Positions 42,561 to 44,901 of a stretch of DNA of 64,000 bases are shown piece after piece. The stretch covers positions 447,640,001 through 447,704,000 of the forward strand of contig NC_091282.1 in the NCBI RefSeq assembly GCF_032444005.1, read 5' to 3'. Source of the stretch: Ranitomeya imitator. Taxonomy: Eukaryota. The translations under genes and the position numbers were made by a program. Every line of letters starts with the position of its first letter. The first letter of the stretch is position 1. The notes under the pieces were generated by a model, which saw only the letters and a list, made by a program, of their open reading frames with translations, did no database searches and was not told where the DNA came from.

Positions 42561-44134
42561 CTAGATGGTGGCCCGATTCTAACGCATCGGGTATTCTAGA
42601 ATATGTATGTCCACGTAGTATATTGCCCAGCCACGTAGTATATTGCCCAGCCACATAGTATATTACCCAGCCACATAGTATATTGCCCAGTGACGTAGTA
42701 TATTGCCCAGCCACGTAGTATATTGCCCAGCCACGTGGTATATTGCCCAGTCACGTAGTATATTGCCCAGTCACGTAGTATATTGCCCAGTCACGTAGTA
42801 TATTGCCCAGCGACGTAGTATATTGCCCAGTCACATAGTATATTGCACAGCGACGTAGTATATTGCCCAGTCACGTAGTATATTGCCCAGTTTTGTAGTA
42901 TGTTGCCCAGTTTTGTAGTATATTGCCCAGTCACGTAGTATATTGCCCAGTCCCGTAGTATGTTGCTCAGCGACGTAGTATACAGCACAGAGCCACGTAG
43001 TATATTGCCCAGTGACGTAGTATACAGCACGGAGCCAAGTAGTATATTGCCCAGCGACGTAGTATATTGCCCAGTCACGTAGTATATTGCCCAGTCACGT
43101 AGTATATTGCACAGCGACGTAGTATACAGCACAGAGCCACGTAGTATATTGCCCAGTCACGAAGTATATTGCGCAGCCACGTAGTATATTGCCCAGTGAC
43201 GTAGTATACAGCACGGAGCCACGTAGTATATTGCCCAGTGACGTAGTATACAGCCAGTGACATAGTATACAGCACAGAGCCACGTAGTATATTGCACAGC
43301 GACGTAGTATATTGCTCAGTCACGTATGTCACAGGTTAAAAAATAAACATACTCACCTAACGATGCGAGGGCCCCTTGTAGTTCTAACATACCATTCTGA
43401 TCGCTGCTCCTCAGGGTCTCGTCTCTCCGCCTCCTGGGATCCAACGGCGCTGTGCCAATGGGCGCGCGGCTGGCGCCATCTTCCGTTCCCAGGATGCTTT
43501 GCGAAATTACCCTGATGACTTAGCGGTCTCGCGAGACCGCTAGGTCTTCTGGGTGATTTTGCAAAGCATCGCTGGGAAAGGAAGATGGCGGTAGGTGCGA
43601 GCGGACAACGGAGGGTGAGTATAGCAGGTTTTTTTTTTTTTTTTTTTAACTATTTTTAACATTACTTTTTTTTACTATTGATGCCGCATAGGCAGCATCA
43701 ATAGTAAAAGGTTGGGGATATACAGGGTGAATAGCGGCGGTAACAGAGTGCGTTACCCGCGGCATAACGCAGTCCGTTACCGCTGGCATTAACCCTGTGT
43801 TAGCGGTGACCGGAGGGGGCACCGGGGACAGTGACTGCGGGGAGCATGGAGCGAGCGCCGGGGACAGTGACTGCGGGGACCATGGAGCGGGCGCCGGGGA
43901 CACTGCGGGGAGTATGGAGTGGAGCGCCGGGGACACTGACTGCGGGGAGTAGAGATAATGGAGCGGATCGCCGGGGGCACCACGGGGAGTAAGGAGCGGC
44001 CATTTTCTTCCGGACTGTGCCCGTCGCTGATTGGTCGCGGCAGCCATGACAGGCAGCTGCCGAGACCAATCAGCGAATGAATAACCGTGACAGAAGGACA
44101 GACAGACGGAAGTGACCCTTAGACAATTATATAG
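42561..44134 (-). mobile_element. Non-autonomous Helitron, family B, copy 2
   Basis: Minus-strand 3' hairpin CCCGAT/ATCGGG then ccaccat CTAG|T; same internal arrays as 6126-7634; 5' end abuts (TA)n. Confidence 0.85.
43455..43620 (+). promoter_or_regulatory. Promoter/first-exon-like cassette in Helitron B (CCAAT, TCTCGCGAGA, YY1-like AAGATGGCGG, 5' splice donor)
   Basis: CCAAT 43455-59; TCTCGCGAGA 43527-36 at the apex of an about 120-bp hairpin; AAGATGGCGG 43582-91; AGG|GTGAGT 43615-20. Function untested. Confidence 0.45.
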
Positions 44135-44199
44135 TATATATATATATATATATATATATATATATGTGTGTATATATATATATATATATATATATATAT
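44135..44199. repeat. (TA)n microsatellite with a short TG interruption
   Basis: Directly visible. Confidence 0.95.
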
Positions 44200-44211
44200 T
44201 TATTTATTTAA

Positions 44212-44637
44212 AGCACCGCTCCAGAATTTTCTTTTCTTGCAGCGCAGGAATGGTGCTGGTAAAGCAAGTTCCCTATACTTAGTGTTATACTTACCAGCTG
44301 CTGTCTTCATCTGTTCTCTGCACCACTCTGGTCAGTCTCCAGAAGTTTGAGACTTGCCAGATCGCACCAGTGTTTGCTGGGCAAGCCAGAGATTACGTTT
44401 CAATGCAAGTCTTTGAGAGACTTGTTCTGGCTCTTATAGACTTGCAGTGAGAGCTTGTGGCCATTATATCTGACTTCGGGATAGTCAGGAGGTGCAGTCT
44501 CAAGATGGTGATGCAATACGGAGTGGTGTCTGGAAGAGCTGATGACCGCAGGTGGTAAGTATAATACTAGGAGCAGGGATCTTACGTTAGTGGCACCACT
44601 CCAGCGCTGCAATAAACAAAACCTCTGCAATGATGCT
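44212..44637. mobile_element. Kolobok/T2-type MITE
   Basis: TTAA|agcaccgctcc...gatgct|TTAA; internal palindrome; ACTTAC 44289-94 and GTAAGT 44555-60. Confidence 0.65.
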
Positions 44638-44711
44638 TTAATAATAGCATTATTGAAGAAAAAAATACCTTGTTCCACTATTTTGTTAGTAAAATACTTT
44701 TACTTTTTCAG

Positions 44712-44901
44712 GGGAACTTTGGAAGTGTTGAACTGTGCAGATATGACCCATTACAAGATAACACTGGTGAAGTTGTGGCAGTTAAGAAGCTCCAGCATAG
44801 CACTGAAGAATACCTGAGGGATTTTGAAAGGGAGATCGAAATTTTGAAATCCCTGCAGCATGAAAATATTGTCAAATACAAGGGAGTTTGTTATAGTGCA
44901 G
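44712..44901 (+). CDS. jak2: JAK2 coding exon (exon 20 equivalent), JH1 N-lobe
   Basis: tcag|GGG AAC TTT...AGT GCA G|gtaagc; [63 protein letters not shown]; VAVK lysine present; 190 nt. Confidence 0.97.

Follow-up and report, generated by a model that had tools for sequence, protein, structure and literature searches.

A Banp-centred, donor-flanked palindrome carried by a non-autonomous Helitron in intron 19 of Ranitomeya imitator JAK2

Introduction

Intron 19 of JAK2 in the frog Ranitomeya imitator, the locus studied here, finds its closest described counterpart in HelibatN3 of vesper bats, a Helitron that has captured a piece of NUBPL, comprising its promoter, its 5' untranslated region (5'-UTR), its first exon and a part of its intron 1, and has amplified it to roughly a thousand copies (PMC4224331). 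Bat Helitrons with 5' gene ends are those reaching the highest copy numbers, and some bat Helitrons have equipped host transcripts with start sites, start codons and splice sites, the effects of such captured 5' ends on transcripts being mostly neutral or disruptive (PMC4224331). We have analysed a stretch of 64,000 nucleotides of the R. imitator genome (assembly GCF_032444005.1, contig NC_091282.1, forward-strand positions 447,640,001 to 447,704,000; hereafter the window, numbered from its first letter), in which a non-autonomous Helitron lying in this intron carries a CpG-rich cassette that resembles a promoter followed by a short first exon. A first-pass annotation of the window had proposed that a transcript started in the cassette could splice in frame to JAK2 exon 20 and encode a kinase beginning MAVGASGQRR-GNFG... 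and freed of the FERM, SH2 and pseudokinase (JH2) domains, the latter being the main brake on the JAK2 kinase. The precedent invoked in that proposal, namely that bat Helitrons have captured and spread a promoter plus a first exon, is indeed provided by HelibatN3 and NUBPL (PMC4224331). In what follows we describe the anatomy of the cassette and its carrier, compare it with a second copy in the same gene and argue that the cassette is probably a silent or near-silent passenger of the intron.

Two further systems are relevant to this locus. Intronic transposable elements (TEs) can initiate truncated kinases, as in ALK-ATI, where the long terminal repeat (LTR) LTR16B2 in ALK intron 19 transcribes into exon 20, or in the LTR-driven truncated ERBB4 and in L1-MET, cases collectively referred to as 'onco-exaptation' (PMC5134097). 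Besides, the Banp motif is found at CpG-island transcription start sites and its binding is reported to depend on the methylation state of the motif (PMC9363121, citing Grand et al. 2021); the identification of TCTCGCGAGA in the first-pass annotation as the Banp-bound motif of CpG-island promoters agrees with these reports.

Results

The cassette is carried by a non-autonomous Helitron antisense to JAK2

The cassette lies within an element of ~1.57 kb, here copy B, which recurs in the window as a sister copy, copy A, inserted in the same orientation in another JAK2 intron (Table 1). Identity between the copies amounts to 90.6% in an alignment of 776 columns, and both termini are common to them. 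Read on the minus strand, copy B ends with the hairpin CCCGATGCGTTAGAATCGGG (42591-42572), which can be written as CCCGAT-GCGTTAGA-ATCGGG, followed by 7 nt, the tetranucleotide CTAG (42564-42561) and a T, i.e. the CTRR end, with a GC-rich hairpin no more than ~10 nt before it, by which Helitron 3' ends are recognised. Copy A terminates with the same hairpin, having ATAG in place of CTAG, and is also followed by T. The occurrence in both copies of the hairpin, the 7-nt spacer, CTAG or ATAG and the T therefore identifies the carrier as a non-autonomous Helitron, an assignment that the 3' end and the copy structure support well, as does the listing of open reading frames (ORFs) of the window, in which no long ORF (Rep/helicase) appears within 42561-44134. 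To the proposal that the cassette is Helitron-borne, which these termini and the two copies bear out, we add the orientation of the carrier, minus strand and thus opposite to JAK2.

At the other extreme, the apparent 5' end of copy B follows an A inside a (TA)n stretch and reads CTATATAATTG, the canonical TC being absent from this position. The sequence common to both copies opens CTATATAATTGTCTAAGGG and a TC (TCTAAGGG) is found 11 nt inside, as judged from two copies with (TA)n flanks; this internal TC resembles the TCTAATAT of the neighbouring Helitron. Both copies have an A before the 5' end and a T after the 3' end, and both flanks are TA-rich microsatellite.

Several other features of the element differ between the copies or are kept in both. 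The GC-rich repeat of ~36 bp counts ~3.6 units in copy B and roughly 8 in copy A; array length thus changes quickly within this Helitron family. Two more perfect or near-perfect hairpins, TACTATTGATGC...GCATCAATAGTA and GGCGGTAAC...GTTACCGC, occur in the cargo at 43655-43800 and are kept in both copies. The minus strand of copy A bears two donors, at 6721 and 6760, one of them directly after an ATG (CAGAATG then GTGAGT); this double donor apparently arose from a 39-nt duplication that copy B does not have.

A palindrome centred on the Banp motif forms the core of the cassette

The motif listed in Table 1 as the exact centre of the palindrome, TCTCGCGAGA, has two matches in the window for 0.00 expected from shuffled sequences, both of them in the Helitron copies, and the YY1-type 10-mer GGAAGATGGC is likewise confined, within the window, to these two copies; the motif cluster is therefore beyond chance. 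A YY1-type ATGGCG is present on each arm, 53-54 nt from the centre. Since GGAAGATGGC thus occurs on both arms, the start codon noted in the first-pass annotation (43585-87, in the Kozak-like context AGGAAGATGG, aagATGG) is simply the ATG within a YY1-type motif. Beyond each arm lies a separate outward-facing donor; the one on the plus strand is 84 nt away from the centre, the one on the minus strand 176 nt. With a simple position weight matrix (PWM), which serves ranking only, the plus-strand donor (43615) scores 10.0, a value that places it at the 99.4th percentile among the GT sites. GC content and the CpG observed/expected ratio (o/e) are 0.60 and 1.01 over 43400-43620, and the o/e remains at 1.03 over 43400-44100. 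Taken together, the Banp-centred palindrome, the YY1-type site on each arm and the outward donor beyond each of them give the module the look of a small bidirectional promoter of the CpG-island kind, from which a short, non-coding first exon would extend on either side.

In a four-arm alignment including both copies the 71-nt arms are 84-87% alike, and orthologous arms of copies A and B are 92-93% alike; past 71 nt the arms are unrelated, with 31-41% identity. Six arm-specific differences are common to both copies, which implies that the palindrome is older than the split of A and B and was already imperfect by then. The same six differences rule out a perfect, recent fold-back, a structure that had also been considered. 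The two donors are not mirror copies of each other either, given that the arms are unrelated past 71 nt. Folded as single-stranded DNA, the palindrome reaches -70.5 kcal/mol (z = -14.25).

The elements that the first-pass annotation had listed, i.e. the Banp motif, aagATGG, the ten codons and the donor, were all recovered by direct reading of the sequence, and its description of a promoter of the CpG-island type followed by a short first exon accords with the Banp motif, the YY1-type sites, the CpG o/e of 1.0 and the strong donor. The CCAAT box of the same list is likewise present, at 43455-59 in copy B; copy A reads TCGAT there. The two copies give no support to CCAAT as an ancestral promoter box, the state of copy B being one CpG transition away from CCGAT. 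Moreover, the palindrome separates this box from the plus-strand start.

The in-frame fit to JAK2 exon 20 looks specific to copy B

JAK2 is transcribed from the plus strand of the window. The identity of exon 20 as part of the JH1 kinase domain of JAK2 is beyond doubt: the translated exon matches JAK2 chains in the PDB with E = 2e-37, JAK3 being far weaker, and it is identical to human JAK2 at 60 of 63 residues. Its acceptor (...ttttcag) has a good pyrimidine tract and opens the exon in phase 0. Exon 19 closes on a complete codon, so that the junction is phase 0 on both sides and the arithmetic of the proposed fusion is correct: a donor in phase 0 at 43615 would indeed join exon 20 in frame, as the first-pass annotation had stated, exon 20 opening with GNFGSV. 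Its caveat that the product would be devoid of strand beta1 of JH1 and of the first glycine of the P-loop is equally sound. Both are encoded by exon 19, whose terminal LKFLQQLGK we take, from established kinase anatomy, to be strand beta1 plus the first glycine of GxGxxG. Alignments of exon 20 to crystallised JAK2 JH1 chains start at residues 16-52, that is, the crystallised constructs contain 15-51 more N-terminal residues than the start of exon 20.

Comparison with copy A gives a different picture of the putative first exon. At the right-arm YY1 site copy A reads GAAGAAGGCAG, with AAG where copy B has ATG; it carries 8 extra nt before the donor (38 nt, phase 2), and the donor itself, GGG then GTGAGC, is weaker than that of copy B. 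As neither the ATG, nor the frame, nor the quality of the donor is kept in copy A, nothing indicates that a first coding exon has been under selection. Neither arm of the palindrome is conserved coding sequence, the minus-strand ORF running into a stop after 22 codons. In addition, an open upstream ATG in phase 0 is a common property of strong plus-strand donors in the window (10 of 33, a base rate of ~30%). The open in-frame stretch of ten codons is peculiar to copy B, and the fit to JAK2 looks like a copy-specific coincidence rather than a design. A transcript encoding MAVGASGQRR-GNFG... is possible, but a JH1-only JAK2 product is unlikely.

A word search with exon 20 retrieved 104 short proteins of other species, none of them 100% identical and none with GQRRG. 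In all of them translated intron (...LQ or ...FK) precedes GNFGSV, which makes them ORFs of genomic contigs, uninformative on transcripts. No paper on a truncated JAK2 driven by a TE emerged from a search of the literature.

CpG decay between the copies points to at least partial methylation in the germline

Both copies have retained a CpG o/e of ~1.0, vs 0.32 in the adjacent non-TE intron and 0.56 in the whole window. Differences between A and B affect 15.8% of the CpG-context positions and 8.0% of the positions elsewhere (p = 0.006); for transitions alone the figures are 13.7% and 4.2%, respectively. This excess of CpG transitions points to a footprint of germline methylation, at least partial. 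In fully methylated mammalian DNA the excess of CpG transitions is roughly 10-fold. We assume that copy B is methylated and silent, as would be expected by default.

Table 1. Main features of the locus, in order of position in the window
Feature	Coordinates	Strand	Remarks
Helitron copy A	6124..7634	-	same family and orientation as copy B; upstream JAK2 intron, flanked by coding stretches at ~4.5 kb and ~11.2 kb
JAK2 exon 19	38056..38192	+	ends ...LKFLQQLGK then GTAATT, on a whole codon, phase 0
Helitron copy B, carrier of the cassette	42561..44134	-	non-autonomous, ~1.57 kb; JAK2 intron 19
20-bp tandem array	42611..43326	.	~35 units, within Helitron B (Tandem Repeats Finder); same array in copy A
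Outward donor consensus, TAG then GTGAGT	43348..43359	-	G at 43356; kept in copy A at 6721
Palindrome, 2 x 71 nt	43461..43602	.	centre between 43531 and 43532; inverted repeats I1 and I17
YY1-type GGAAGATGGC, left arm	43475..43484	-	minus-strand ATG at 43479, ORF stops after 22 codons
Banp motif TCTCGCGAGA	43527..43536	.	exact palindrome centre
YY1-type GGAAGATGGCGG, right arm	43580..43591	+	contains the ATG at 43585
Ten-codon open stretch MAVGASGQRR	43585..43614	+	not conserved in copy A
Donor consensus, AGG then GTGAGT	43612..43620	+	G at 43615; 13 nt outside the palindrome
GC-rich repeat, ~36 bp	43822..43999	.	part of the CpG-rich cargo; longer in copy A (7180-7470)
Foldback element (see text)	44208..44641	.	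between Helitron B and exon 20; arms of 121 nt, 74% complementary
Potential pseudo-exon, 312 nt	44243..44554	+	acceptor ...ttcttgcag, donor GTG then GTAAGT; several in-frame stops
JAK2 exon 20	44712..44901	+	GNFGSV...CYSA; JH1 from the second glycine of GxGxxG

A foldback element with its own splice sites lies between the cassette and exon 20

A separate element, a foldback miniature inverted-repeat transposable element (MITE), stands between Helitron B and exon 20 (Table 1). Its outward donors at 44294 (minus strand) and 44555 (plus strand) score 10.7 and 9.6 and are 261 nt apart, the spacing of the outward donors being 259 nt in the Helitron. CpG o/e in the MITE is 0.31. The element is flanked by TAA on both sides, is possibly of the Harbinger type and leaves 70 nt to the acceptor of exon 20. 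Within it, a strong acceptor at 44243 and a strong donor at 44555 delimit the potential pseudo-exon, whose in-frame stops make it a possible poison exon of JAK2; an RNA started in the cassette could include this pseudo-exon ahead of exon 20, or in its place.

Other elements of the window and database scans

A second, unrelated non-autonomous Helitron occupies 40519-42538 on the plus strand, starting with TCTAATATATAAAG and ending with the hairpin GCCCAGGCAACGCCGGGC and CTAG, then T. Its interior is made of 16-, 20- and 33-bp arrays, and it has its own copy on the minus strand at 566-2701. This Helitron and the carrier of the cassette stand tail to tail, with their 3' ends 22 nt apart, and both families also occur together in upstream JAK2 introns. 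Adjoining open frames of 378 and 397 aa on the plus strand at 47417-49722, in the intron after exon 21, are reverse-transcriptase-like and probably belong to a young copy of a long interspersed nuclear element (LINE). A run of 154 N (gap or masked) interrupts the window at 23034-23187.

Exact-pattern scans of metagenome contigs returned 0 matches, both for the core of the cassette and for the terminal 3' hairpin. Comparison of 40400-44720 with Rfam gave sub-threshold chance matches only, i.e. mir-297/mir-1277 on (TA)n and, on the palindrome, RUF6-5 with 29.9 bits, the gathering score being 70.

Discussion

The anatomy of the cassette, the Helitron identity of its carrier, the comparison between the two copies and the frame arithmetic can all be read directly in the window. 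We consider it likely that the cassette is a silent or near-silent passenger of the intron. A non-autonomous Helitron has inserted, in minus-strand orientation, into intron 19 of JAK2 with the cassette as its cargo, namely a CpG-rich module of ~260 bp whose palindrome is centred on the self-complementary Banp motif and whose outward donors lie outside the arms. The most likely source of this module is a host gene whose 5' end, either as such or after an inverted duplication, was captured and amplified by the Helitron, in the way bat Helitrons did with NUBPL. The YY1 motif supplies the ATG; the open stretch of 30 nt and the match of its phase to exon 20 (phase 0) look like accidents of copy B. 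Methylation of the copy would also block Banp binding. At most, rare Helitron-initiated chimeric RNAs would then be produced, and no functional JH1-only JAK2. That the module arose by capture, that it is silent and that it yields no functional product are inferences.

Some observations weigh against this interpretation. Because a CpG o/e of ~1.0 has been retained and the transition excess between the copies is 3-fold, well under ~10-fold, the cassette may have been partly protected from methylation. The Banp motif, three of the four YY1-type sites and the donors are intact. The apparent 5' end of the carrier adjoins (TA)n and opens CTATATAATTG rather than the canonical TC. It could be argued from there that the cassette acts as an alternative promoter and first exon of JAK2, with transcription starting near the YY1 site, splicing at 43614^44712 and synthesis of a MAVGASGQRR-JAK2 protein without FERM, SH2 and JH2 that might be active, dead or dominant-negative. 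The motif set, the Kozak-like context AGGAAGATGG, the strong donor and the phase-0/phase-0 match on which such a promoter would rely are all real, CpG o/e is 1.0, TE-initiated kinase-only isoforms are known (LTR16B2 in ALK intron 19, MaLR LTRs in ERBB4; PMC5134097) and bat Helitrons do provide host transcripts with start sites and start codons (PMC4224331). Nonetheless, we regard this possibility as quite improbable, considering that the ATG, the frame and the donor are not kept in copy A, that the two copies differ by a footprint of CpG deamination and that a competing acceptor and donor stand between the cassette and exon 20. The latter is only a moderate objection, as canonical JAK2 pre-mRNA must normally skip the pseudo-exon too. 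Moreover, a product devoid of beta1 and of the first glycine of GxGxxG would be doubtful as a folded N-lobe, and the presence of copy A in the same orientation in another JAK2 intron means that, were these promoters strong, an essential gene would contain two internal ones.

A different function, unlikely in our opinion, is that the module serves the transposon itself: the Banp/YY1 core and the flanking U1 sites would keep the copies open and unmethylated, or stabilise transcripts in either direction, thereby favouring mobilisation in trans and scattering 'portable first exons', with the JAK2 chimera as a non-functional by-product. The coexistence in one intron of a Helitron and a foldback MITE, both with strong outward donors ~260 nt apart, is suggestive of such a device, as are the retained CpG content and the fact that bat Helitrons with a promoter, 5'-UTR or first exon outnumber those with other parts of genes (PMC4224331). 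Outward pairs of strong donors are not commoner than inward ones in the window, however (6 vs 19), the centre of the MITE is CpG-depleted (0.31) and the family comparison is that of two Helitron copies. It is tempting to speculate further that both the frog Helitron and the MITE carry a selected, orientation-independent and methylation-resistant Banp/YY1 promoter with U1 sites, which would fire in some tissue and splice into host exons genome-wide, at JAK2 yielding a fragment without JH2 and beta1 that could be dominant-negative or deregulated; we would give this extended version very little weight. As for a native regulatory element of the JAK2 intron, or a chance cluster of motifs, instead of transposon cargo, the CpG richness of the region and the short distance (1.1 kb) from the cassette to a conserved exon downstream might evoke it, but the idea is hardly tenable and is already contradicted by the recurrence of the whole 1.5-kb unit (arrays, palindrome and termini) with Helitron ends at 6124-7634, and by the chance expectation of 0 for the motif. 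An intronic passenger remains our preferred reading. Transcripts started in the cassette would be recognisable in RNA-seq by three exact junctions, namely 43614^44712, 43614^44243 and 44554^44712.

Among the known systems, HelibatN3 is the closest to the element described here, being likewise a non-autonomous Helitron with a promoter-like region and a short first exon that ends in a donor. In both cases the cargo exists in several copies that have landed in introns of other genes, and these might, in principle, obtain from it a start site, a start codon and a splice site. Unlike that of HelibatN3, the core of the frog module is a 2 x 71-nt palindrome whose flanking donors point outward on both sides, here in two copies. 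The module is also reminiscent of the Banp/YY1 core promoters of CpG islands (Grand et al. 2021, as cited in PMC9363121) in having TCTCGCGAGA near a YY1-type AAGATGGCGG, a CpG o/e of ~1 and a GC content of ~0.6, but it differs from them in sitting in a multi-copy transposon within a gene body. On the other hand, the locus shares with the ALK-ATI type of truncation an intronic TE placed just upstream of kinase-domain exons in a compatible frame (intron 19, phase 0/0). ALK-ATI, ERBB4 and L1-MET were established with RNA and protein proof, occur in tumours after de-repression, depend on retroelement promoters and keep a complete kinase domain, whereas the frog element is a DNA transposon and its predicted product would start inside the glycine loop, so that the catalytic domain would not be complete. 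Were the cassette to fire, frog Helitrons would be spreading working promoters as bat Helitrons do, and the JAK2 insertion would represent a counterpart, built on a DNA transposon and fixed in the germline, of the ALK-ATI mechanism that is specific to tumours. Our findings document, in a Helitron-rich frog genome, a promoter-like and donor-flanked module borne by a Helitron.

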